From Paragordius varius (lineage: Eukaryota > Animalia > Nematomorpha), in assembly GCA_964247055.1 (NCBI GenBank), contig OZ176055.1, positions 1,364,001 through 1,428,000 on the forward strand: a stretch of 64,000 nucleotides of DNA, given 5' to 3'. Below, in pieces: positions 8,903 through 64,000 of the stretch. Each line of letters begins with the position of its first letter. Position 1 is the first letter of the stretch. A program made the translations under genes and the position numbers. Under the pieces are notes generated by a model, which was not told where the DNA came from, ran no database searches, and saw nothing but the letters and a program-made list of their open reading frames with translations.

Positions 8903-10530
8903 TCTATCTATATATTTTTAAAAATGGAGAGTGGTGGCTTTGTGATCTGTTTACGGAAAACCGATAGACCCATTCAAATCCAAATGTCGAAAAAATGCAA
9001 TCATTAATGAATGCCCCGACAATAGCTTCGCCCTTTTTTGAATTAGGGCCCCAGTTCGGGCCCATCCCGTGTAAAAAACGGGTTTTTAAAAATCGTGTCT
9101 TTGAGACAATTTTCTGGAAAACGTGTTGGACCATTCAATTTCAAATATAATACTTATTTTCAATTGCGCCGAACATAGGCGGCTCACTTTTTTAACTTAG
9201 GCCCTCTTTGGCCGCTACCCCCAGAAAATTTTTTTCAAAAAATTAAGTCCACAAAAATAATTTTTTGAATCTATTTTTCGCCACCGTAAAAATTTAATAA
9301 GGATTCCTCCCTGTTAAAAGGCAAAACTTTAGTCGTGCGTTTCTTTTATATTGGCTGTCGGGTAAGGAGCTACCCGCTAAAAACTGATCCGTTATGTCGT
9401 AATATCGTACCCTTGGGGCTAAATTTAAGAAAACCTATCAGACCATATGAGTTCAATCCGTGCTTAAAAAATTACCCGTAACAAGGCAAAAATATAGCTC
9501 GCACGGTTTTTTAAATTAGCCGTTAATTAGGCCCTTCACGCCCTAAAAAATGCGCCACCATAGAATGATTTTTAATTTTGGGGCAATTAAAACTAAGGAT
9601 AGCATATAGAATAAATCATGATTCCAGATTTTCTCCGTGAATAAAAATTAAATTAAGCGCTTTTTTGCATCAATTTCTGGGTAGGGCTTTACTCGCCTAA
9701 AACTGCGGCACTATATCGAAGTTCCGTTGTTTAGAAGTTTTTTTCAGAAAACTTATCAGGTCACATAAGTTTTATACGGGCCTGAAATATTACCTGTGAA
9801 AAGGCAAAAATTTAAATCGAGTGGTTTTTTAATATTAGCCATTAATTAGGCCCTTTGCATCCTAAAAATGCGCTATCATTGAACTATTTAATAGTTTTGA
9901 AGCTTTTCTTCCAAAAACTATTAATAACATATGAAATGAATGATGATTTTCCCTCTAAGGCAAAAATTTTATCGAACGTCTTTTTTATATAGGTTTCTGG
10001 CTGGGAGATACCCGCCAACAACTGCGTCACCATATCGATGCAGCACAGAAAACCTAGGACTAATAGGAATATAAGAAATCCATGATTTCCAGACATTGCC
10101 CATATTAAGGCAAAAATTTTGCCCAACGCTTTTTTATACCCCTGGGTAAAGAGCTACCCGCCAAAAACTGTGCACTGTATATCAATTGCGTTGTTTGGAG
10201 CTAATTTGTTGTAATTTTATGAAGCCATATGAGCTCATTAAAAGCTTGAAATATTACCCATAACTAGGAAAAGAAGGTCAGGTTTTTTTTATAAGCTGTT
10301 AATTTGGGACCCTTATGACCTAAAACGCCATCAATCACGATTATCTAGTGTTTAAGTATTTTTTCGCATAACCCATGAGACGATGGTATCAAAGATAATT
10401 CCAAATATTCCTATAAAGGCAAAGAATTTAACTGCTTTTTCCATATAGGTCTATGGGTAGGGGTCTATCGGTAAGACGCCATAAAAAATGGCTTAGTTTT
10501 GGACCTAATTTTCATAAAACTTAAGAAGTC
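8903..10530 (+). mobile_element. Helitron-like element, copy 2 (3'-truncated)
   Basis: A|TCTAT...ATTTTTAAAAATGGAGAGTGGTGGCTTTGTGATC 5' end and the same subrepeats as the other copies. Similarity stops at ~10530. Confidence 0.7.
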
Positions 10531-10769
10531 ATACCTGATGTCAAAAATAAAGGTTTTTTGCACGTTTCACCCAATAATTGCCTATGTTTTTTTCTACTAA
10601 TATCATTGCGGAATAAATATAATTTGTGTTAACATTGTTAAAATTTGGTGTGGTTGGGCCTTTATACTATTAAACGCGCTCAACAAAAAGATATCACAAT
10701 GAATAAAACAAAATTATAACGATGTAATCAATTGTATATATAAGGGAAATCCAAACTGAATGCGTTTCA

Positions 10770-11310
10770 TCCTAAAATGCTCTATTTTGGAAAATTTAAA
10801 AAACAATTATATGAATATACCAGTTTACCACTATTAAATCCTATATGTTTTTTTCTATGATCATTGTTTTAAAAAAGGCAAGATATCATCTCTGATACTT
10901 ATAATAAATGATTAAAATTGTTTTCATTCTGCAACCTTAGTTTTTTTTGAGCAACAACAATCGAAACTCTTTTCGAAAAAACATAATAATTTTGAAAAGA
11001 TTTTGTGTTTCTTTCGTCGTACAATCTTTTGATTCTGCAAATTGTTCCCAGAATATAGTGCATCTTGGTTTTTTTTCATAATGAAATTTAATTTGTGAAA
11101 AAAACATTCAATAGGATTGAGTTGGGGCAAATTAGGTGATAAATATATTGTTTCTTAAATTACCCAAAATAGAACATTTATGAATGGGTGCGTTGTCGCA
11201 AATGACAAACGCATCTTGTGGTAACATAGCCAAAGACTTCTTAAAAAATGGCTTAAAAGTCTCGCCATTAAACGCCGCTCCCTGTTTGATGTTATAATTA
11301 ACAATACTGC
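10770..11310 (-). pseudogene. Decayed IS630/Tc1-family DDE transposase fragment (-), with a second short (+) copy at ~10770-10880
   Basis: Minus-strand translation across a frameshift gives ...GAAFNGETFKPF...FVICDNAPIHK... and ...LSPNLPQLNPIECFF, matching the DNAxxH and PxYSPxLNPIE motifs of IS630/Tc1. Confidence 0.7.
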
Positions 11311-37582: not shown

Positions 37583-39900
37583 TCTATATATTTATAAAAA
37601 TGGAAATGCTGGCTTTGTGATATGTTTGTGGTAAACCGGTAGAATCATTCATATCCAAATGTCGAAAAAATATAATCATTAATGAATGCCCGACAATAGC
37701 TTCGTCCTTTTTTTAATTAAGCCCCGAGTTCGAGCCCACCCTGTGTAAAAACTGTTTTTTTAAAAAAATCGTGTCTTTGAGTTTCCGGAAAACATGTTGA
37801 ATCATTCGATTTCAAACAAGAACTTTTTACTTTTTTTTTCGATTGCGCCGAACATGATCGGCTCGCTTTTTTAATTTAGGTCCTCTCTTTACCCGCTCCC
37901 CCGTAAATTGCCATTTTTTTCCAAAAACGTCCACAAAATAATTTTTTGAATCTATTTTTTTGCCCAAGGTATGAGACCGTAAAAATTCAATGAAGATTCC
38001 AGTTATTCCCTGTTAAAAGGCAAAAATTTTAGTCGCGCGTTTCTTTTATATTGGCTACTGGGTAATTAGATGCCCGCTAAAACTGCCCCCTCATATTGAA
38101 ACGGCGTACTTTTAGGGCTAAATTTCAGAAAAATTATCAGGCCATATGAGCTCAATAGGTACTTAAAATATTACCCGTAAAAAGGCAGAAATTTTGGTAG
38201 GGCTGTTTTTTAAAATTAGCTGTTAATTAGGTCTAAGCCCAGAAAATGCGCCACCCTAGAATTATTTTTTAGTTGTGTGGCAATTTTTCGAAAAACTAAT
38301 GACATATGGAATTAATCATGATTCCAGTCCGTAAAAAGGCAAAAATTTTAACCAAGCGGTTTTTTGTATCCGCCTCTGGGAAGTCAACTACCCGCCTAAA
38401 ACTGCGCCACCATATCCAAATTTTGTTGTTTAGGATTTTCAGAAAACTTATTAGGCAATATAACTTTAATAAGGGCCTGAAATATTACCCGTAAAAAGGC
38501 AAAATTTTAAGTCGAGCGGTTTTTTTTTAATTAGCCGTTAATTAGGCTCTTTACGCCCTAAAGGCGCTATCATTCAACTGTTATTTAGTTTTGAAGCCAT
38601 TCCAAAAACTATTAAGAACATATGGAATGATTCAAATTTTTTCATCGAACATTTTTTATAGTGGCCTCTGGGCAGAGGGCCACCCTTCAACCTTGCCACC
38701 ATATCGAAACAGCATGACTTTGGATGCAAATTTTAGATAATTTATCAGACTAAAAGAATTTAATAGGGTTTTGAAATATACCGGTAAAAAGGCGAAAATT
38801 TAAGTAGACCGGTTTTATTACCCCTTAATTAGGCGCTTTTCCTGAAAACACGCGCCACCATAGAATGACTTTTTGTTGAGGCATTTTTTCGAAAATCTCA
38901 CGAGAGCATATGGAATCAATCATGATTTCAGGTATTAACTGAAATAAGGCAAAAATTTTATTCGAGCGTTTTTTTGGTTAGGGGGCTACCCGCGTAAAAC
39001 TGCCTCATCATATCTATACAGCATGTCTTTGGAGCCAAATTTTAAAAAATTTATGACACTATGTGGGTTTAAGGGCCTAAAATATTTACCATTAAAAAAA
39101 ATATTTTAGTATAGGAAGTTATTTTAATGAGTCATTAAGTAACGTTTTACGCCCTGAAAAATGCGCCACCATAGAACTTTTAGTCATACTTCCACGAACT
39201 TATAGGAACATATGGAAGCCATGATAATTCCAAATATTTCCCACATAAAGGCAAAAATTTTGCACAACGCTTTTTTATGCCTGCCCATGAGTAAGGAGCT
39301 AATCGCCAAGAGCTGGGCCACCATATAAAAATTGCGTTGTTTTGGAGCTAATTTACAGAAAATATATGAAGCCATATAAGCTCATTAAAAGCTTGAAATA
39401 TTACCCGTAACTAGGTAAAAATTAAGGTCGGCCTTTTTTAGCAGTTAATTTGGGGACTTTATGCACTCGCCATCTATAACGATTATTTACTGTTGAGATA
39501 TTTGTTTGAATAACCCAAGAGACGATGGTATCAAAGATGATTCCAAATATTTGCCCTATAAAGACAATTTAACTCGGCGCTTTCTCCATATAGGACTCTG
39601 GGTGGGGGTCTATCGGTTTAAAACTGAGATGCCATACAAAAATGGCGTGGTTTTGCAGCTAATTTTCAAAAAACTTAAGTAGCAGTGAGAGTTCAATAAG
39701 GGGTATAAATATTACCCATAAAAAGGTAAAAATGATATTCCCCTTAGCCGTTAATCTGGGGCCTTCACAGCAGTCAACAATATATTAGTACGAATGCACA
39801 GTTATGAAGCACCGTTTTTTAACTTTTATGAGATCATAACTATTAATGATGTTTCGAAATAATCCACTTATTTAGATAACAATTTCGTTGATCCCCTTTT
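37583..39900 (+). mobile_element. Helitron-like element, copy 5 (alternative 3' segment shared with copy 3)
   Basis: A|TCTATATATTTATAAAAATGGAAATG 5' end and subrepeats. Its 3' segment AACAATATATTAGTA...TTTCGAAATAATCCAC is shared only with ~20240-20330. Confidence 0.75.
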
Positions 39901-47938: not shown

Positions 47939-50650
47939 TTATAATTTATTTACAAAAGATATCAAGATAGATATTATAGCTATTGTAATATAAATTAAAA
48001 CAATTTTAATTGTAAATTTATGATTATTGTCGTTTGATATCTTAACAATATTTATGCGATTATCTATGGATGTTGTGAATAGTAAAGCGGAATAATTCAA
48101 TATACTGTCAGAATCCTTTTCGTAATGATTAACATTATAATCATTATAATTGGGAATGTTTAGTAAATTTAGACCAGTTATGAAAGCAGTATGAGCTTTA
48201 ATGTTACATAGGGCCTGTTAAAAAATAATAAATTTACAATCAATTTTAAACATATAGCGCTAAAATATAGAGAAAGTATGGTAAAAAATTGAATCATAAA
48301 AACAAAACATATTAAGTTAAACTAAAACGGATTATATACAACTATTGTTTGAAAAAAAACGCCGTAGTTTTATTTTATGCCTTATTGTTTTAAACACTAT
48401 TTTATTGTGTAATATAAAAATTTACTTGCAAAGAAGCATTAAATATAAAGACTGACCCTTCGTTCGTTCCAACAGCGATAAAATGAGCACTGTTAATATG
48501 TATATTAATATAAATTAATAAAATATTCTGCTTTAATGAAATTAATAAAATGTGATGGATATTTTTGATTCAGTTAATTATATATATGTATAAGTTGGAT
48601 TAGATAAAAGTACTAGCTATATTTTATTAAGCACCAAGAAAAATTTTTTTTATTACGAAATAATTGTAAAATTTCAATTTTATATATGTGTATTAATATA
48701 GTGTTGTTGTATATAAATTTATAAAAGGTTTTATTTTTTTGTGGTAAAAAAACAAAAATCAAATGTTTCATCATCAAGATCCTATTGGAAAATATTAAAT
48801 TGATTATAAATTGCATTTCAATCAATCATTTATCTTTTTTTGTTCCATTAATTATTGATATTTATATTATTTTTTATTAATTTTTATTGTTTAAGGCTCA
48901 GTATAATCTTTGTAAACGTATGTAATTTTATTTTATTATATTTTAAAATCGGATAAGTGATGATCTTATTCTGAGCTACTTATATTGCTGTTTATTATAA
49001 AATATCATTATAAGAAGGGTTTATTTTTAAAAAACCCAATTTTTATCAAAAACGAATGAAAGTTGGTAATGATGTGTCAAATTATGTTAACAATAAACGT
49101 AAAAAGTTAAATTATACATATGTAAAATTAAAAATAATGAAAACATCAATAAAAAATTTACTTGGAAGCTAATTTAGAGCAATTTTCTTTGGCTATCGGT
49201 ACTGCTTTACAAAATTTATAATCCTTTTTAATATAAATGTCAAATCAATTATACGTCATTTGGTAGAATATTCCATAAACTTAGGTATGATGTTTCTTTT
49301 TTGTTGGATGGATTAAGGACAGTTAATAATTCATAATTATTTCTTAATTAATATAAATAATATAATTTCCACATTGTTAAATGTTCGTTTTCAAAGAAAA
49401 CCAAACATTTGTATTAGGGTTGATTTAATAAAGGCAAAAAACATCAAGCTTAATATTTTTTTATGAAAAAATCATTTGTGAATCTTGATTTTTCCATATA
49501 ACGGTTATAGAATACAAAATTAAGTGTGTTACCAATTTACATCTCTATTCCTCGTTTCACAACCTAAAATGCTATAGGTTATAAAAAAATCCATATAGAT
49601 ATAAAATGGGTTCTTATAATTTTTATTAATCAATATATATGTTTTGACTTAAATGGTATATATTGTCAAGGTGTCTAATTTATTACTATTAATATTTATA
49701 TTATATAACATCAATTGAAAAATGTTAATAATACATGTTTTAAAGTTTTTTTTATCACATCGAATAAAGCATTATTTTCAATTTTTTAAGTAGAAACTTA
49801 TTTGAGTCGAAAATTTACGAATGGGAAATTTTAAACAATATACTATATAAAAATTGAGTTATATTTTTTAACCTAACCTGTATTTACACGCCCTAAATTT
49901 ATAACCGGATTTATGATTCCATTCAAGTGTACATTCTTGTTTCCCTTCAAAACTCCAAACCTGCGCAGGACAATTACGAGAAATTAAAGCAATCTAATAA
50001 AGTTTTTAAAGTTATAAAAACGTGCTGTAATTGATCACATATATCCATATCATCAATCTCCGATTCAAAAACTGAAAAATTATGCAACTTTTTGAGGTTG
50101 GACTAAAATAAATGTGGATTTATATATATGAATACGTTCATAATTCGAACATGACCATCAGACGCCGCACTTATTATGAATACTAATGATCTGTTTTGTG
50201 AGGATATGCAAACACATTTTTGGTAAGTTTCATGATTTCGCTCATCAATCAGTGTAGATTTTAGCTTTTCTATAGAAAATTCTAATACATTATGGTAAAA
50301 GCATTATAAACTACTATCGGATAAAATAGGATTTATGTTCAAATTATAAGTATTGCATTTGTTATCTGCACCAATAGCCAAAAAATATTTGTCCTGAATC
50401 GATTTTATAGACATATTCATTGGGGCATCTTTCTCCATATCCAACGTGTAAAATAATTCTCCAAAATATCCCTTATCATAATGGATTCGGTAAATATTCT
50501 AAAATATTACAACTTAAACTCTACCAAAACATTGGATATTCCAGTTTTGGAAGAACCACCTCCTCCAGCAATAATAACATATCTTGAATCTAAATTATCA
50601 ATGCAGTATATTGGGATGGGAGACTTTATAGGTGGATATTTAACATACAT
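47939..50650 (-). CDS. PREB: SEC12/PREB, Sar1 guanine-nucleotide exchange factor (WD40 + C-terminal TM), ~376 aa
   Basis: Exons 50650-50525, 50498-50315, 50269-50136, 50102-50022, 49993-49878, 49342-49255, 49223-49162, 48489-48426 and 48214-47939 total 1131 nt. K-loop IAGGGGSSKTGISN, SDGHVRI, YKFRAC, GTNEGSV...SLQ...AHTAFIT, TSIDNR, and TM IVLIYITIAIISILISFV. Confidence 0.9.
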
Positions 50651-51947
50651 AACGTCCTTAATTTTCTTATATGGACTATATTTAAGACATTATTCTTTTA
50701 ATAATGAGCCAACAAAAATTTAAATTCCTTTTTAAAATTCAAGCGTGTATGAGCCAATTTTACCATGCATATGCTTAAACGTATGGTAGAGAAGAAATAT
50801 ATTGCAATGAAAATATCGGTCATTTTTTTCTCTCATGATGTATAATATTTTTGGATTTTCGGTAATTTAAATATAGGGGATTTTAAAATAATAATAGTTT
50901 TTTGGGTTTATCTCATTATTTTTTTCTAAATAAGCGTTTGATTATGTTGAACTTTAATTAAGAAAACTCCTTATTTTGATAAAATCCAATTTAAACACAA
51001 AATATAAATATTGAGCTTGCGAGTCGATATTCCTTTTATCATTTTTTAGCAACAACAAAAATAAGGAAATCCATATTTTACATTCTGTAAGCAGAAGCTA
51101 AATATTTAGATCCAAACTTTGTTGATAACCATCTAAAGTATGTTTTGTATATATTATGTATTTATTTAACAATCTAAATTTTTTCGTAAATTTTTAAATA
51201 TTCTTCATCATAGTTAATAGCTAAAAAATTTATTTTACAAATAGCATTTTGGGGATTTAGGGAACTATTATAACATTTTAAAATATTTTAACATGCGTGT
51301 TTTAGCATTGTCAGACTTTTTGATATGTTACACAGAATAAAATTCTGAGTTGATTTAAAAAGCTTTTTACAATTTTGGGTAAGTGATTTATATCTAAAAT
51401 GGCAAAATTTGCACACATTTTTTTTAAAATATTTTTTTAGGTGAAATCTAAATGCCTCATTCCAAAATACATCAGAAAATGAATCTAAGAATAAATTTTA
51501 TATTAATTTTTTATAGAACTATGCTCAAGACCAGAATTTTTCGCTCTGGCTATTTTCTTAAAATAAACGGGAAAGCTCAGATTGCGCGATAAAATATTGA
51601 ATATATGCTAAATTTATATACTAAAAATATTTTTTTAAATAAATTTTCAAAAATTATATTTTACACAAAATTTTATTAAAGCCTACTTCATATAGAGAAC
51701 TTTTAACATTATAAAGAGACCTTTTCTGTATATTTGAGGATGCTAAACATTACTATAAACTCAAAATTCAATTAAAATATTCGTTCATTTTCAAATTAAT
51801 CTTATCTGTTTTGTTACATGGCCAAAGTTTAAAAGCAAAAGAAGCTTAACATTTAATTCTGAGGCGGTAGAAATGTTCATCATCACCAAATTACATAGAG
51901 TGTTTTTATGTTCTACGTCCCAAATCGAAAGGTATAAATATATTCTG

Positions 51948-53797: not shown

Positions 53798-55290
53798 TCA
53801 AGTTCGTTTTGTATTATCACTATTATTCAAATCATCAAATTTTTCCGCTATCTCTTGCGTTAAAGGGGAAACCTCTTTCATCCGTCTCAAATAGCCTTCA
53901 TCCAAAGGGGAAAATATATCGGCTGTAAGATTATTGCTACTATAGGAGGCGGTGGATTTGAAACGTTTTAACAACCGCTCCAAAATAACATCAATTTCAT
54001 CTTTATCTATCTCCTGCAAACTTGGCATGATTTGAGGATCAATTTGTAGGAAATGTGTAGATCCCTGCTTCTGCTCTTCAGAGCCTGTATTTTGCGTATC
54101 GAGCAATGTTGTGCTTTCATTTTTGGCATTAGCTTTTTCCGTGGGCGTTGCACAGGGATTCACAATTATGATTGGAATCGGTTTAATCAGATAAGATTCC
54201 GAACCTGAAATATCGGTTCTTTCTTGACGAGTCATTGTTGAAACTGTTTCCGCTAAGGGTGCGTTAGTCAATAAGCTATCAGAAGATAAGATCCCTATTT
54301 TCATGTGGAATTAAGTATTAGTTAGGGTCTTTTTTAATCAAGTGTATATATGTCTAATATCTAATACCTTTTTTGATAGAGTTATCCATTGATATTTCAT
54401 GTTTTATCATTTCATCTAAAATATTTTGCGTTTAACTCCAAGTGGTTTAAAAAAAATCAATTATTGAAAATAATTTGTAATATGTATATTCAAACCTGTG
54501 AATGCTTTAGCACTCATGGGTCCATCCAAAACTAAAAACTCTGCATGAAAAAATTCTATCATTAGAAAATTAATAATAATAAATTTTAATAAACCATCAA
54601 TTGATTCTTTGTTTGGGGGAGATTCACTGGTTTCTATATTCGATTCTATCATGTGTGTATATAAAAAAATAAATAATCTAATAATTTATTTTTTTCACAT
54701 ATAAAAAAAGTGTTAAAAAATTTACATCTATCTTGATTTACTAATGAAATCCGTAACAAAATTTTCCCAAAAACTTTCTTTTACAGAAATCAAGTTTTTA
54801 TGCTTAATTTTAATAATTTTTAGGTAAAACACGCTCTGCATTGTGCCGATCCAAAATATTTAAAATGTATAAATTAACATACTGCCTTCATCGTCTATGG
54901 GCATGATTATTGATCCCTTCAATTCTAACATAATAAAATAAATGTGTAGTCCTAAATATCAATACATGTGTTTTTAAGAGCTTGAAACCAAAAATGGAAA
55001 CTAAAAATACAACTTACATGGTTCCCAATTAAGTAGCAAAAGTTTGAAAATTAAATATGGGTCTAATTCCAACATTTTAAAACTACCTCAGTTTTGTTAA
55101 ACTTTTGATATCAGATACTCAAATTTGGTTCTAATTATTTTCAAAATATCCGGTAACATCGTTTTTTCTAGTTCCAAGCTCATAAATAATATAAAAGATA
55201 GTTACCTGGCGAAACTTCAACGATAAACTTTTCGCATACGTTTGTTTCTAATCTCGGTTTCTTCCCAAGATTGATTTCTTCAAATGATAG
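53798..55290 (-). CDS. Low-complexity acidic coding exons, probably the C-terminal tail of the USP36/42-like gene
   Basis: A series of phase-1 exons (e.g. ...KFIVEVSP| ending 55206, LKGSIIMPIDDEG, SNIETSESPP, FFHAEFLVLDGP, EMIKHEIS, and a long terminal exon to 53798). The link to the exon ending at 55409 is not resolved. Confidence 0.5.
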
Positions 55291-55408
55291 GATATATATG
55301 GCATAATATATAAGGACCTATACAATTCCGAAAAATAGTCAGAGGATGACTATGTTTATTCACAACCTGATTGAAATATCAGATTTTTATATCTAAAACG
55401 TAATATAC

Positions 55409-58400
55409 CATTTATTTTTTCGATTGATCGCTTCCGCAACAATTCATTCAATGCCATATCGTTTGGACTTCTTTCAATGAAGATCGTACCTAGTATGAAA
55501 ATTTGTTACATTAAAGCGCAATGCATCAAAATAAAAAATGGTTCGCCAACTAAATAGATCTATAAAAAAAATTAAAAAGAGCGGTATTCACAAGACATAT
55601 AATTGCATAAAACAATGTATACTTTCCCTTTTGAGCGATGCTAATGTGCGGTGAGTATTGTCTATTTGGTAAAACAGCATATAAGAGTTAGTGTTGATCA
55701 CCTCGTGTAATGTGCTAGGTTGAATCTTAAATATTGAAATAAAAACATTAATTAAATCTTCGTATATATCCTCCTTATTCTTTAACTGTAACATTTTCCA
55801 TTTATGGGCATCAAGTTTAAAAACTTGAGAATAGATCACATAGAAAGGGATTCATAAAACACTATCAAAACAGAAAACTAATTAATAACATATTACAATC
55901 AAAAATTATAAATTTATCAAAGTTTTTAATTTTTGACATATCTATATTATTGCCATATTTTTATATCCAGGTTTAAATTACTATTAATTTTATAAGTCAC
56001 TGTGGTCCACTGCATCCAACGGTTAAAATTTCATTTTCATTTTAAATATTATTTAAAATTTCTCAAAAAATAATTTAAATTTTTTTGTGGACGATTGAAC
56101 CTTATAAACGACTTTATCCTTAATTTTATGGTGAGCTTTCAGAATCCGAGTTGAGCTAAGTGGCATATGAAATTTAAAAATCAATTTGAGCTAAAGAGTA
56201 TATTACTTATCTATGGAATTAAAATAGGTATTTTAGAATATATTTGATTTATATCATATGCTTACCTTATTTTGGTTTGCATTAATTTTGCGTATATGGC
56301 GTTCGTTGTAAATTTATAATTAAAAAAAAGTGCGATTTGATTAAAGTCTACTGATAATCCTAGATTTAAGGTACCTATTGAAATCCCATTTAATCTAAAA
56401 TTTATTTTCTCAGTTGTTATTAACAATTCAAATAATTTTATTTCGTAACAAATTTTGACTTTTACCAGCCTTTTTTTTGAATTTATGCTATAAAGATGCT
56501 TTAAGACATCTTTTATTTTAATTTTTTTGACCTAAATAAGAAGAAACCGAACAACTCAATATATAAAGCATTTACAGTAAAAATTGAACTTATATGGACA
56601 AGATTTGAAAATTTAAAGAAATATTTTTTTCAAAAAGACAACCATACTTTTTTAAATTTTGTTTTTTGGATATAACTCATTGTTTTAAACTACAAAGTAT
56701 AATGAAAAGTCTATTAGTAGCACAATCAATTTTATATTTTACGATTGTAATTAAAGGTTTTTAAAATGGCTTAAAAAAGTATGTTGTCTTATTACATTTC
56801 CGTATAATTTCAATCTTTACTGTAAATTTAATAAAATCAACACTTATAAAATTTATACAGACATAACGTAAAAACTAAAGTGCAAATATTTTTAATTACA
56901 ATTTTGATAGTATAGTAGATAGGGTGCCGGACTCTGACACTGCGTGCCTGAGTTCGAACCCCGAAACTACGCATTTTTTCCATCATCACTGTCAGCCCTG
57001 GGCAGGCGAGTGTTTAAAGCCTTCACATGTCCGGATACAATTTAAGTCCTTACCCTTTAATAAAAAAGGAAAAAAGAGACTCTAAACTGTATATTTATAT
57101 ACTCAACGTTTATAAAAATGTATATTTTTCACACACTAAATTAGATATTTCAAAATCGTAATATTGTTTATCAAAGAAAAGGTTTATACATATGGTTGTA
57201 TTTTTTTAAACATATTTGCCTTTAATTTTTTCATTTTAATTTTAAATTGGTTCTTTATAGCACATTAAGCCTATATAAATGATTTTTATCTTAAAATGAA
57301 CTTGGCTCATGCAATGATTCAAAAACATTTTTTTTGGATAAAAATTTCAATATAATACATATGGATCCTTGATAAGTCTCCACGTTTGATCAGGTAATTG
57401 ACAATGAATACTAAGTTCGTTTATTCCATTGTCACCTTTTTGTTGTGCCACATTGGCATATAACTTGTAAAACAATTTTTTACCCTAAAACAGAACGAAT
57501 TCAATTCTTATATCAATCATAAATTTCTAACACACCAATATTTTCAATAATTTATTATTTTAAAAAACTAAAAACGACAAAAAGTATATTAACCAATATT
57601 ATAATAAACATAATAAACTAACCAAAGTATCTGTCATAAATTTTCTAAGATCCATGACTGGGCTAACAGAAAATAATTCATGCGGAATATTTTTTTGATC
57701 AATGTCAAATTTTGATGGAGAATGCGTGGATATAGCTTGAGAAGCGGGACTTATAGTTTGACTTTCTCTGCCTGAAATCTGTTGACTACTGAAATTATTA
57801 ACGTTTCTTAAAACTATTGTCAAGAGGTTGGGTGGATGTAGGATTTTAGTTTTGGCCGTTAATTTTATAATCTTTCTGCACCTTTATGAGTAATAATACA
57901 TTTATATATAATTGAGTTTATCAAAGTTATTCTCGAAACCATAAAATTAATTTTAGGTACAAAGCAAAGAGTGATTACAGATTTTTTCACCCAATTACCA
58001 AACTTGATCTTAGTTTATGGGTATATTTGTACCCTTCTTATGGTTTATGTTAGTGATTAACGATTAAGAAAGTATTAATATCATTGAGTTTTAGATAAAT
58101 TTTATTGTGTAATCTTTAAATTAATTGCTTTTATTTAGATGTCTGGTCGTAAATATAATTGATTATAAAATAGAGTGATATCAAATACTTGGGACAAACG
58201 TCATAAGATTTCTTGTTAAACCGTTTACTAAAATTCATATCAATCGCTTTTTCCAAGTTGGTGCAATTCTGTAACCAAAAATATAAAAAAATAAATTGAA
58301 AAGTTTTAATAATCATATTATAGTATTGTATTACATTACTTTGGCATCAATGCATAATTGATAAAAGGAATTATCTTTAAACTCCCAAGCTTTACAATTT

Positions 58401-60124
58401 GGACACTCAACTATATATAAAGAATAAATCAAAAAAATCAATCGAACTTAATTTGATAGAGTTAATTTTGTGTTTTCTATATAACCATATCTTCGAATTT
58501 TAATGCTTGTATTAAAAATTAAACATTGAGACATAAAATATATCCGATTTTTTCGTACTTACTATATATAGAGTATATTAATTTTTCGTTTTATGATAGA
58601 TATTTTTTTAAAAATGAAAATAAAATATATATTTGTTAATATATATCTTACATCTGATCCTTAGTAAACCCCGAAAATGTTCAGCCATGTTGATGGCATC
58701 ATGCCCATAAGAATCTTTACTATAAAAATATATAAAAACGAGCATTTTAAAACTTTCAATTTTATCACACAAACTAACTAAATTGGTTGAAAACACTTAT
58801 TTTTTCTTAAAGTTTCCTGAATACCTTATGACATTTTTCTAAATAGAGCATAAAAATGGTTTCAGTAAAAAAACAACTTAAACTCACCCCGCCGTAATAT
58901 CAATCGATTGACGGATCATTATAGTAATGATTGAACGAAATAGGTGAACCAAATCGTAATTCCAAGCTATCCCATAATACTGGAACATATCTAATCATAA
59001 ACATAAAAAATGTGGGTTTTTGACCATTTGCAGGGCAGTCCATAAATTTATTAAAAATATTGTAAAAAATATACGGAATAATTAACTATCATATTTGAAT
59101 AATTTTAGTTAAATTTGTGTTTCTCAAACATTTATTCAAATACTTTTAGCTAAGAACTGTGCCGAATTTTGGTAAAATAAATAGCATTAATTTATGATAA
59201 GGTATTTGTTAAAGTGTCTTAATCTTAAAATTTAATAAATTTTTATTTACCCATATATTATTAATACGGGTCGCAAATCTAGTTTATTGGGAACCCCTGG
59301 TTTAAGGTTTATTTTTGTGATTTAATCAAAAATTAAAAATTTTATGGTTTTCCATATAAAATATAAGAATAAATTCTAATTTTTCCAAGCAATAAAATCT
59401 CTTAATTTTAAAAAAACGAAAAAGCATATTTTCGGTTAGTGTCAAACCTTGTAACTTTTTGGAGAAAGCTCTCATGTTCAGGCATGTTATCCGATCTGAA
59501 ATCCTATTTTCTAAGAGCTCAGTTAGGATACAATATATACAGCGATCTTTCGTTGGGCCTGCATTACAAAATATATATTTATCAATTTATATGTATTTGC
59601 TTTTTAATGCCCATATCATTAACAAGTGATAAAATATCTCAATTAAATATACTTTAATTGCAGTATGCTCATTTATGTTGGCCTGTTCGAAACACAGTAG
59701 TGTGTTAAAAAAACAAGAAAATGATGAAATTAAGCAATTTTTTCCTATTTGGGATTAGGTTTTAATAATGGACAAAAAATTTATATCACCTATTTAAATA
59801 ATGTGATTAACATAAATATGCACACTCTATTTTTTGTGCCGCGTCCCATGTTCCGCATAAAAAAGGATTGATTTTAACGAAACCCCCATTGAAAATGTTT
59901 TTAAAACCCTTTTAAGGATAAATTACAAAAATTAATTATATACATTCTTTATCATGGCCTCCAAGCATGAGAGAATTGGTGATTAAAGTTGTGTATGAAA
60001 GTGCATGTAAAAGAACAGCCAGTGCAGTTTCAGTGCTATCTATACTGCCAAAACTTTTAACTAAATTGGGCATATAATCTCCCCATTGAAGTAAGGTATC
60101 CAAATTAAATAAACTTTTGGGCAT
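55409..60124 (-). CDS. USP36/USP42-family ubiquitin-specific protease domain protein lacking catalytic Cys and His (candidate pseudo-DUB)
   Basis: Exons 60124-59944, 59558-59448, 58990-58888, 58719-58652, 58410-58340, 58268-58189, 57881-57623, 57484-57359, 55725-55623 and 55489-55409 all match in phase with no stops. ALSYTTLITNSLMLGGHDKEC...CIYC, FRGLLRIRFECPNC, YDVCPKC, PPNLLTIVL, YKLYA...W..IKD...NSYMLFY follow the USP36/42 motif order. Confidence 0.8.
56905..57050 (+). mobile_element. tRNA-derived SINE-like element (intronic)
   Basis: A-box-like TAGTATAGTAGATAGG, anticodon-arm-like GCCGGACTCTGA and B-box GAGTTCGAACCC, followed by a non-tRNA body shared with 12.8 and 13.6 kb. Confidence 0.6.
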
Positions 60125-60410: not shown

Positions 60411-62742
60411 AACTGGCCCTGTCATATTTCGCTGTAACGTATCACCGATAATTATTATTAATAATTTGTAATAAATAGAGGTAATTCAGATAAAAAATAA
60501 AAAAACATAAATAATAAAAAGAATATCTTTAATTATTTTTTACGGGCTTTTGCATAGGCTTAAATATTGTTTAATCGAAATCGACCATTTTTAAACTGTC
60601 CCTTATTAAGTGAATATATAACTATCATTTCTATATATTTTAGAATTTCTGTTTTACGAAATCATGGTAAAACATTGTGTTCACACAGCTGGGATCAAGG
60701 ATATAAAAAGTATTTTAGCCCCTTTTTAAAGGAAAGATGATATTATAAAAATTCCCCAGAAATGTGTATAACTGAACTCGTATGGCTTCTTAAGTTTTTG
60801 AAAATTAGCTCCAAACCCATTCCATTTTTGTATGGTGTCTCAGTTTTAAACCAACCCCTACTTATAGACCTATATGGAAAAAGCACTGAGTTAAATTCTT
60901 TGCCTTTATAGGGCAAATATTTGATACCATCTTTGATACCATCGTCTCATGGGTTATTCGAAAAAATACCTCAACACTAAATAATCGTTTGATGGGGTAT
61001 TTTTAGGGCATAATGACCCCAACGGCTTATAAAAAACGCCTGACCTTTTTTACTACGGGTAATATTTCAAGCTTTTAATGACTTGTCTTCATAAATTTCT
61101 ATAAATTAGCCTTAAAACAACACAATTTCTAAATATTGGCGCAGTTTTAGGCGGGTAGCTTCTAACCCAGGGGCAGGTATAAAAAAGCGCTAGGCGAATT
61201 TTTGCCTTTATATAGATCTAGAATTATCATGGATCTCATATGTCCTATTATCATGATTTTCTGAAATTTGGCTCTAAAGGCATGGTTCGATATGGTGACG
61301 CAGTTTTACGCGGGTAGTAGCCCTCTAACCTGGAACGCAACAAAAAACGCTCGATTATTTTTGCCTTAATAATATCTGGAATCATGATTGATATGCTCTC
61401 GTAGGGTTTTCGAAATTGCCTCAAAATCAAAAAGTCATTTTATATTGGCGCATTTTTTAGGCAAGGGCCATTAGCGGTAATTTAATAAACCGCTCTGCTA
61501 AAATTATTGCCTTTTTACGGGTAATTTCAAGCCCTTATTGAACTTATATGACCTAATAAGTTTTCTAAAATTTGCCTCCTAAGTGACACTGCATCGATAT
61601 GATAGCGTAGTTGTTGGCGGATAGCCCCCTACCCAGAGGTAAATATAAAAAAGATGTTCGATAAAAGATTTTTCCTTTATAGGGGAATACCTGGAATCAT
61701 CATTCATTCCATATGTTCTTAATAGTTTTTGGAAGAATGGCTTTAAAACTAAATAATTGTTCAATCATAGCGCATTTTTTAGAGCGAAAAGAGCTTAATT
61801 AACCGCTAATTCAAAAAAACCGCTAGACTTGAATTTTTGCCTTTTTGCGGGTAGTATTTCAAGCCCTTATTGAACTCATTTGACCTAATAAGCTTTTTTA
61901 AAAATTAATGGTGGCCCTGTTTTAGACGGGTATCTTCCTACCCAGAGGCTGATCTAAAAAAGCGCTTGATTAAATTTTTGCCTTTTACCCAGAAAATACT
62001 GGAATCATGATTGCCATATGCTCTCATTAATTTTTGGAATTGCTTCAAAACAAATCATTCTATGGTGGCGCATTTTTCAGGGTGTGAAGGGCCTAATTAA
62101 CGGCTAATTTTGAAAAACCGCCCAACCTAAATTTTTGCCTTCTTACGAGTAATATTTTACTATTGAACTAATATGGCCTGATATGTTTTCTGAAATTTAG
62201 CCCCAAAGGCAAGCTATTTCGATATGACGGGGCAGTTTTTAGCGGGTATCTCCTTACCCAGCAGCCAATATAATATATACGCGCGACTAAATATTTTTCC
62301 TTTGGGGAAAACCTGGAATCATTGAATACTTTACGGTCTTATATTCTGGGCGAAAAATAGATTAAAAAAATTATTTTTGTGGACTTGTTTTTTTAAAAAA
62401 AGCATTAAGAAGGAAGCGGGTAAAAAGAAACCCTAAATTTAAAAAGCTAGCCGACTATCGGCGCAATCAAAAAAAGCAAAAAATCATATTTGAAATCGAA
62501 TGGTCCACTCGGTTTTCCGGAATATTGTCTCAAAGACACGATTTTTGTAGACTTCTGTTTTCTAAATAACCCGTTTTTACACGAGGTGGGCCCGAAATGG
62601 GATCCTAATTCATAAAAAGGCGAAGCTATTGTCGGGGCATTCAATAATGATTATATTTTTTTGATATTTGGATTGAATGGGTCTACCGGTTTTCCGGAGG
62701 CAGATCACAAAGCCACCACTTTCTATTTTTATAAATTATAGA
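60411..62742 (-). mobile_element. Helitron-like element, copy 6 (near full length, ~2.3 kb)
   Basis: A|TCTATA 5' end at 62742. The 3' end reads TTATCGGTGATACGTTACAGCGAAATATGACAGGGCCAGT, a degenerate version of the hairpin at 18461-18501. No TIR or TSD. GGAATC landmarks recur about every 310 bp (61378, 61692, 62008, 62314). Confidence 0.8.
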
Positions 62743-64000
62743 TTAGATTTGCCATTAATATATTTTTTGTTTAATTTAGTTGCAACAAATATTTTACATT
62801 TAACCATGATTAACTGCATTTATGAGCGCTTAGATCGGTTATAAACCCTGCCGAACCCTATCTGAATTTAATATCATTTTTCCTATATTGATTAAAATTT
62901 TGGGTCCTTTTTCCCTATATTATGAGAAAAATATTAAAGTGTTGTTTTGTGCATTTATCGGCTTTAAATAATGACCCGTAAATTCTATGCTCCTTCTACT
63001 CCAACAATTCTATTTGAGTTCCTTCCAAAATATTTTTGAGGCCCGTGAGAAATGTTAAAAACAACATTTTAAAACTAAGATAACATTTTTTTAACAAATT
63101 TTCTGAATACGCTTTACTAATTTTGAGATTTAACTAGAAAAATTAAAATAAATACCAGTTTTTACAAACTTATGTTTAAAATCTAATAAAATATTTTTTC
63201 ATATATTTGAGAATGCGGGTTGAAATGCGGCCCTCAAATCTATTTGTTTTGGAAACCTTTGGTTTAAACGATTGTAATTGGGGGTAATGGGCCAAGCGTA
63301 TGAGAGACCATAAATTTGTACTATTAAAATTTATATTAATATTTAAATTTTTCATTATTACAAATTAAATTTGATATAAAGTAATTTGTAAAGTTATATA
63401 CTGTCAGAACTTTGCTCAGAAATTTAAAGATGTTCAAGGGTAACACACAAATGTTTCAAATTTGCCAAATTTCAAAAAGACTAAGTCTGTAGTTAGTCTA
63501 TTGAATTCATATATATGTTTTTAATCTAAAACATAAGAAATGTGAGTTATAAAGCAATTTCATTAAAAAGATAATTAATAAATTTTAATAAAATTATATT
63601 TACAGGTCATTTCATTTCTACCTGCAACAACTATTTTTTATATCAAAATATTTTCAAAGGTAAGCCTAAATATCAAATCTATTATCATTTGGAAAGGAAA
63701 TCTTAATACCTATCAGACTTTTATAGGGTCACTTCACACGATTATTAATTGTATTGAAAATTGAAAAATTATCAGTTTCCAGTTTATACAAAGAACTTTA
63801 TTCTTTAACCTTTCAAAAGAGTTAGATATAAAAAAAACTTTTTGATTGATAAATGGTGCCATTCCGTATCAGGAGAGAACTTTTTTTTCAAAAAAAGTTG
63901 TACTTAAAAAAAGACTTTAAAATAAAATTATCCATTTTTAATTCTAGTAGCACAATGATGACACATTGTGTCACTCTACCTTCTTTTATTGTGTTGTGGT

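Follow-up and report, generated by a model that had tools for sequence, protein, structure and literature searches.

The window analysed here is a stretch of 64,000 nucleotides from the nematomorph Paragordius varius (assembly GCA_964247055.1, contig OZ176055.1, here C6, positions 1,364,001 to 1,428,000 of the forward strand). On its minus strand lies a gene, here termed the pseudo-USP, that appears to be a diverged copy of a USP36-type deubiquitinase gene in which the catalytic residues have been replaced. The ATG is exactly at position 60124, from which nine exons splice into 1137 nt comprising 378 codons and a TGA, with no internal stop codon, and all eight introns are of the GT-AG type (Table 1). 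Stop-free minus-strand segments carrying USP-like motifs in the correct order provided the starting point for this model; the exon borders were set from the GT and AG sites and the reading frame, and were recorded prior to the inspection of any homolog. The scaffold motifs found in the exons are CPNC, C-P-K-C over the junction of exons 6 and 7, YKLYA, W-RLIKD and SYMLFY, and in exon 7 the strand equivalent to LKRF is followed by some 27 inserted residues rich in Ser, Gln and Thr.

An earlier sequence-only reading of this locus had described ten in-frame exons with canonical splice sites and no stops, retaining the USP scaffold (the CxxC pairs, YxLYA, WxxxxD and xYMLFY). The splice sites, the open frame and all of the scaffold motifs are borne out, and with them nine of the exons. 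The tenth is optional, since exon 9 itself reaches an in-frame TGA; it could be entered through an acceptor at 55489, 55470 or 55392 and would run to a stop at 55358-55356, and is thus possible but not required by the model. The end of the gene at 55409 given in that reading was not reproduced, the stops being found at 55588 or 55356. The protein would end 26 residues past SYMLFY at the TGA at 55588, or about 59 residues past it with the optional exon.

Table 1. Features of the pseudo-USP gene, with the introns that it has in common with the active USP36 gene of the same genome. Positions are those of the window.
Feature	Position	Strand	Intron phase	Remarks
Exon 1	59944-60124	-		ATG at 60124; 60 codons + 1 base; degenerate Cys-box helix without Cys
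Exon 1, equivalents of the catalytic Cys	Phe6 60109-60107 or Thr33 60028-60026	-		
Exon 2	59448-59558	-		Codon at exon 1/2 junction is Cys, giving C-x5-C-x2-C like USP36
Exon 3	58888-58990	-		Degenerate QED box, NYD at 58961-58953; 3′ intron of phase 2, 24 residues past Q/N
Exon 4	58652-58719	-		HFRGLLRIR, resembling IFGGYLRSR of USP36; 3′ intron of phase 1, common with active paralog
Exon 5	58340-58410	-		First zinc-ribbon CxxC is CPNC; Cys codons 58405-58403 and 58396-58394
Exon 6	58189-58268	-		Phase-2 intron within second CxxC (between K and C of C-P-K-C), as in both USP36 orthologs
Exon 7	57623-57881	-		Last Cys of second CxxC, then LLTIVLRNV (equivalent of the L-LKRF strand)
Exon 8	57359-57484	-		His box; YKLYA retained; NEL for GHY at 57421-57413; third triad position Lys at 57370-57368; 3′ intron of phase 0, common with both USP36 orthologs
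Exon 9	55588-55725	-		Predicted final beta-strands of the fold (IQPSTLHEVINTNSYMLFYQ); in-frame TGA 55590-55588
Exon 10 (optional, putative)	55356-55489	-		Requires a weak donor within exon 9 (55623 or 55592)
Shared intron 1			1	Within the Cys codon opening C-x5-C-x2-C
Shared intron 2			1	10 residues ahead of Q/N of the QED box
Shared intron 3			1	Past R-x-R of IFGGYLRSR / HFRGLLRIR
Shared intron 4			0	Past D-[AV]-K
Shared intron 5			2	Codon preceding the second Cys of the second CxxC
Shared intron 6			0	3 residues past the triad D/K
SINE-like repeat	56905-57060	+		Inside intron 8, about 155 bp, outside the coding model

The GC content lies between 31 and 40% in each exon and between 15 and 26% in each intron, with overall values of 35.1 and 23.3%, respectively. 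Under a codon model trained on other coding sequence from the same genome the log-likelihood is +0.18 bits/codon in frame; the other two frames score -0.26 and -0.40, and chunks of intron -0.47 +/- 0.07. A run of 378 open codons has a probability of ~7e-13 given this composition, and the frame was open in 0/20,000 sequences after shuffling. We infer that the pseudo-USP is maintained as a coding gene under purifying selection. The decay of an old pseudogene is an unlikely explanation because the frame is open, the exons are richer in GC than the introns and the codon usage is in frame.

The initial identification of the gene rested on motifs, and therefore needed an independent test. The sequence-only reading had suggested seeking an active paralog in the genome, and one of USP36 type is present at C5:13135133-13142216 (locus L014). 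This is the genome's own active USP36 ortholog. It carries the GNTCY, QEDAHEF, GHY and W-YRLDD motifs, and its exon F finds the human USP36 structures 8BS9 and 8BS3 in the PDB at 1.5e-19, with a margin of 24 bits over the next USP. All six introns within its catalytic domain match introns of the pseudo-USP in both position and phase, accounting for six of the eight in the latter (Table 1). The exons delimited by these introns are close in length. Counting full codons in the active gene and the pseudo-USP, respectively, exon B and exon 2 have 36 and 36 (both running from phase 1 to phase 1), exon D and exon 5 have 23 and 23 (phase 1 to phase 0), and exon E and exon 6 have 27 and 26, with identical entry and exit phases in every case. 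Exon C, with 59 codons, corresponds to exons 3 and 4 together with 56 (33+1+22), and exon F, with 112, to exons 7 and 8 together with 128 (86+42), again with identical phases. The pseudo-USP thus has two introns more than the active copy.

A second USP36 ortholog was found in an unrelated assembly (GCA_025450795.1, locus L035), and this has five intron positions and phases in common with the pseudo-USP. One of these is the intron between exons 3 and 4, which is present at exactly the same place in this ortholog but not in the active copy of the P. varius genome. The pseudo-USP thus keeps an ancestral intron where the active copy has lost it, and the duplication is therefore not very recent. 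The other USP genes inspected in the genome have the His box and C-terminus in a single exon, uninterrupted past the D-x-x of that box, and among the USPs inspected the intron positions of the pseudo-USP are specific to USP36 genes. The shared positions and phases therefore point to the pseudo-USP being a duplicate, made at the level of DNA, of a USP36-type gene.

Some features of the comparison genes may be recorded here. The second USP36 ortholog lies on contig JANRHI010071332.1 at 8958-10825 (+), in a compact genome where introns are 35-55 nt in length; it is represented in the protein collection only as prokaryote-style calls of open reading frames (ORFs), of which P0001 comprises one exon with read-through into an intron. 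When exon F from the active gene was used in a word search, with a USP36 profile in view, P0001 was the only match. Elsewhere in the P. varius genome there is a set of similar and apparently active USP genes, at C3:12.29-12.33 Mb, C1:2.09 Mb and C4:12.50/12.51 Mb (loci L002-L004, L006 and L008), with a GNTCYANS Cys box, a GHYVA His box and long N-termini of low complexity. Several of the copies are on C3 and two on C4 form an inverted pair; the set looks like a lineage-specific expansion of USPs.

The pseudo-USP and the active USP36 of the same genome are only ~18% identical over 283 aligned columns. Searches were run exon by exon. Semi-global alignments with a free offset had low power, signals coming from just two exons, 9 (z = 7.5) and 8 (z = 3.0). 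They were replaced by gap-free diagonals anchored at the exon borders, with no optimisation. In seven of eight exon comparisons the anchored diagonal ranked top among all those possible (1/49, 1/69, 1/58, 1/23, 1/125, 1/131 and 1/47), and the summed score was 111, against -215 +/- 33 for shuffled sequences (z = 9.8). The diagonal that places the His box of exon 8 is the one that is top among 131. When the last exon of the USP36 ortholog was compared by tblastn with the 64-kb window it fell exactly on exon 9 (E = 0.004), where 8/25 positions are identical in a gap-free alignment. The USP36 ancestry of the pseudo-USP is thus well supported at the level of gene structure and alignment, because the positions and phases of its introns are common with two USP36 orthologs and the border-anchored alignments agree.

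What has become of the active site? Catalysis by USPs requires the Cys box GNTCF, the QED motif and the His box GHY...ND. In exon 8 the alignment with the genome's own USP36 ortholog is free of gaps, so that the segment YKLYANVAQQKGDNGINELSIHCQLPDQTWRLIKDPY is the counterpart of the His-box stretch. Within this the GHY has become NEL, with His replaced by Glu, and the third residue of the triad is changed from D(D) to K(D) in W-RLIKD. The sequence-only reading had made the same assignments from an ungapped alignment with a USP36 sequence, and the ortholog from the genome agrees. The replacement of the QED motif is likewise confirmed in alignment with this ortholog, where QEDAHEFF is read as NYDLVHLF.

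The Cys box is less simply placed. Exon 1 contains no cysteine whatever the register, just as had been claimed for its Cys-box segment. Against the USP36 ortholog, the diagonal with the highest score has Phe6 at the catalytic position (FNLDTLLQ aligned with CYLNSTLQ; 10/40 identities, score 12), and the alternative puts Thr33 there (8/40 identities, score -1). The residue is not cysteine in either register, but which residue it is remains uncertain between the two; the threonine assigned earlier belongs to the weaker register, and Phe6 scores better. Position -5, which is the oxyanion Asn in USPs, is Met1 or Ile depending on the register, and in the better-scoring Phe6 register the Asn is replaced. 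An internal duplication within exon 1 was considered as the source of the two registers, and was unsupported (p = 0.53). Could the missing boxes be supplied by an alternative exon, as the sequence-only reading had allowed? No peptide resembling a Cys box (GN[TS]C, N.GN.C or C[YF].N[SA]) was found in any frame between 52 and 64 kb of the window or in the adjoining 10 kb upstream, which covers the 14 kb upstream of the gene. Between 52 and 64 kb no frame held a plausible GHY or His-box exon either.

By contrast with the active-site loop, which is wholly replaced, the identities in exons 7 and 8 fall mostly, as judged by eye, where the two USP36 sequences do not differ from each other. All four cysteines of the zinc ribbon are retained, as is the C-x5-C-x2-C element, and the active paralog has CQVC and C-E-S-C as the aligned counterparts of CPNC and C-P-K-C. 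On these alignments all three positions of the catalytic triad are replaced in the pseudo-USP and, because the triad is lost, the protein should not be able to act as a cysteine protease.

A number of observations weigh against this interpretation. Pfam hmmscan on ten exon-sized open frames gave no UCH match at E <= 10, so that the UCH/Peptidase_C19 profile fails on every exon piece. A six-frame scan of the genome (110.6 Mb in 44 contigs, ~27% GC) with PF00443 gave 57 exon matches at about 20 USP loci, none of them at the pseudo-USP, and such detection at the level of exons works for the active paralog (74.6, 46.4 and 25.5 bits). A phmmer search of the PDB with exons 7, 8 and 9 found no USP, and one with exon 7 against 1.84 billion representative sequences gave 0 matches at E <= 0.001, a result that does not prove orthologs to be absent. 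The hhalign comparisons with a profile of two USP36 sequences are in the expected registers, that of the His box included, yet give only E = 0.0012 and 0.19. For exon 1 neither of the two registers reaches significance by itself (p = 0.12), exon 6 is the weakest by similarity and is not significant individually, and the 3′ end of the gene is ambiguous, with a stop at 55588 or via the optional exon 10. Since standard profiles and searches miss the exons, the USP fold is only to be deduced from collinearity.

Further searches gave a similar result. The ESM Atlas returned no usable match with exon 7, and tblastn of the pseudo-USP exons against ten USP loci found nothing significant. Exons 8 and 9 as protein queries against the P. 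varius genome gave self-matches only and no close paralog, and the pseudo-USP is a single-copy gene. For exons 8 and 9 the USP36 locus gives the highest scores (24 and 45), and with other USP loci reaching 19 and 40 the discrimination is poor; for the head of exon 7, other USPs score above the USP36 locus. Thus the similarity is far weaker than the sequence-only reading implied, and no standard tool flags any exon except exon 9 by tblastn.

The immediate neighbours of the pseudo-USP are repeats or orphan ORFs, and the other genes of the window are of animal type, including Ig-domain genes, EMC6 and a protein with the adaptor-complex MHD domain. A neighbouring gene had a nematode protein, 27% identical, as its sole match outside the genome, and the EMC6 product had no exact match. 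The SINE-like element in intron 8 has copies that are 92-97% identical on all the large contigs, with at least 540 candidates at first look, and the family is taken to be young and abundant on that basis; ARAGORN found no tRNA in the element. A second dispersed repeat family occupies ~60700-63000 and 38300-39700, the former beginning about 600 bp upstream of the pseudo-USP ATG. Probing with a 651-bp segment gave at least 1124 first-look candidates, with copies ~80% identical and internal units of ~320 bp. On the other side an orphan ORF of 168 amino acids at 53798-54304 (-) has 38% GC, a clearly coding composition, and lies 1.05-1.3 kb downstream of both possible pseudo-USP stops. Either a small gene in its own right or another 3′ exon may be represented here. 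The ORF lacks Pfam domains and has no paralog in the genome, and as a candidate for a USP36-like C-terminal tail it was rejected, since it has no similarity to the USP36 locus. Further away, at 50106-50689 (-), there are three consecutive open frames, one of which has a YVIIAGGGGSSKTG motif that by motif alone recalls WD-repeat proteins of the Sec12/PREB type.

We consider that the pseudo-USP is probably a USP36-derived pseudo-deubiquitinase (pseudo-DUB), a further case of a known class. The reading that we favour with good, though not complete, confidence is that the gene is live and maintained by selection, and that it originated as a DNA-level duplicate of a gene of the USP36/scrawny type, since when it has diverged very strongly and lost catalysis. 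The paralog of the USP36/42 branch with lost catalysis proposed by the sequence-only reading is in this way supported by the shared introns, the anchored alignments and the replaced triad. The explanation that competes most seriously with it is that of an unprocessed pseudogene or dying gene, in which a duplicated copy of USP36 has lost its function and drifts, the open frame being a remnant. The loss of every catalytic residue would fit, as would a similarity to the parent that is close to undetectable, the failure to find an ortholog with exon 7 and the repeats in intron 8 and directly upstream. Yet neutral drift to ~18% identity at 23% GC should have brought stop codons, frameshifts and lost splice sites, whereas the gene has its full run of open codons and eight intact GT-AG introns; the GC content is 12 points above that of the introns in each exon, the codon usage is in frame, and the zinc-ribbon cysteines and core motifs have been selectively retained while the active-site loop is fully replaced. 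We regard a pseudogene as quite improbable.

It is still less likely that the gene product remains an enzyme, either because non-canonical residues hydrolyse ubiquitin or a ubiquitin-like protein, or because an alternative or unassembled exon brings in the Cys and His boxes. USP39 and USP52 are among proteins whose first labelling as pseudo-DUBs has been revisited (PMC10919355), exon 1 can be placed in two registers, and both the 5′ and 3′ ends of the gene are predicted from the sequence. But exon 1 has no cysteine to offer in any register, the gap-free placement of the His box is the best available, the loss of the triad is accompanied by the change of QED to NYD and, in the better register, by loss of the oxyanion Asn, and no Cys-box peptide occurs between 52 and 64 kb or in the 10 kb beyond, nor a plausible GHY exon between 52 and 64 kb; we think retained activity very unlikely. 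That the gene is not derived from a USP at all, its motifs being a chance resemblance in AT-rich open frames, seems scarcely credible. The failure of the Pfam, PDB and BLAST searches of single exons is what such a resemblance would give, the introns here also hold open frames of 80-90 codons, and short gap-free queries can score highly by chance, as when the head of exon 7 reaches 43 on a stretch that is not a USP. However, chance would place seven of eight anchored diagonals first among 23-131 alternatives with a probability of ~1e-12 if these are independent, and it would have to account as well for the summed z score, for six introns in common with the genome's own USP36 and five with the second ortholog, and for a tblastn match that finds exon 9 exactly within 64 kb.

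How does the pseudo-USP compare with related proteins? Like USP36 and its Drosophila counterpart scrawny (dUSP36) it has the core blocks of a USP in the same order, with the C-x5-C-x2-C element and both CxxC pairs. Unlike them it has just five residues ahead of the catalytic position (taking the better-scoring register), it is without the long N- and C-terminal regions, including the nucleolar tail, and it has the two extra introns and the insertion of ~27 residues relative to the active copy. Pseudo-DUBs make up ~13% of DUBs and typically serve as scaffolds or allosteric partners, and those of the USP family that have been discussed, USP39 and PAN2, are ancient and universally conserved (PMC10919355). 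USP39/Sad1 is likewise a protein of USP fold that has neither catalytic Cys nor His and is held to act non-catalytically (PMC10919355); however, it is ancient and universal in eukaryotes, has a ZnF-UBP domain and a role in the tri-snRNP, while the pseudo-USP has no ZnF-UBP, is of the USP36 lineage and has no detected ortholog. PAN2/USP52 also keeps an inactive USP domain as a structural module, but in a protein conserved across eukaryotes that combines WD40, USP and exonuclease domains, in contrast to the stand-alone USP core found here. The sequence-only reading had stated that no pseudo-DUB is known from the USP36/42 branch and, as far as one review goes, this agrees with the USP-family cases discussed there (USP39 and USP52; PMC10919355). 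One parallel in terms of scaffold is engineered. Flies in which USP36 is catalytically dead are viable with only minor growth defects, while nulls die, and therefore the USP36 scaffold has roles that are independent of catalysis (PMC12406001). The dUSP36 C181S and C181S/H439D mutants rescue growth and viability, and like the pseudo-USP present a USP36 scaffold without catalysis; but they are full-length point mutants that keep their partner-binding regions, whereas the pseudo-USP is natural, diverged and truncated, and exists beside an active USP36.

A probable course of events can be outlined. A deubiquitinase gene of the USP36/scrawny type would have been duplicated at the DNA level, and the duplicate would then have diverged to its present low identity with the active copy, losing the Cys, the His, the Asp/Asn and the QED box. 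The thumb, fingers and palm blocks have been kept in order, together with the zinc-ribbon cysteines, YxLYA, W...D and SYMLFY. The resulting non-catalytic protein of USP fold would most likely bind ubiquitin or a protein resembling it, or else one of the partners of USP36, and would act as a shield, decoy or scaffold. That the protein folds, is expressed and has a binding function we infer. A more specific proposal is that a lineage-specific dead USP core binds ubiquitin or FUBI as a decoy or shield beside the active USP36, with ribosome biogenesis and the germline as examples of where this might occur, as part of a broad conversion of enzymes to pseudoenzymes in this lineage; in that particular form we consider it rather unlikely.

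The gene is at present a candidate from a single species, and the weight to be placed upon it is moderate. If our interpretation is correct, nature would have carried out a useful experiment in the form of a young, stand-alone and dead copy of USP36, which would show how much of the USP36 core is retained once its non-catalytic functions are all that counts.

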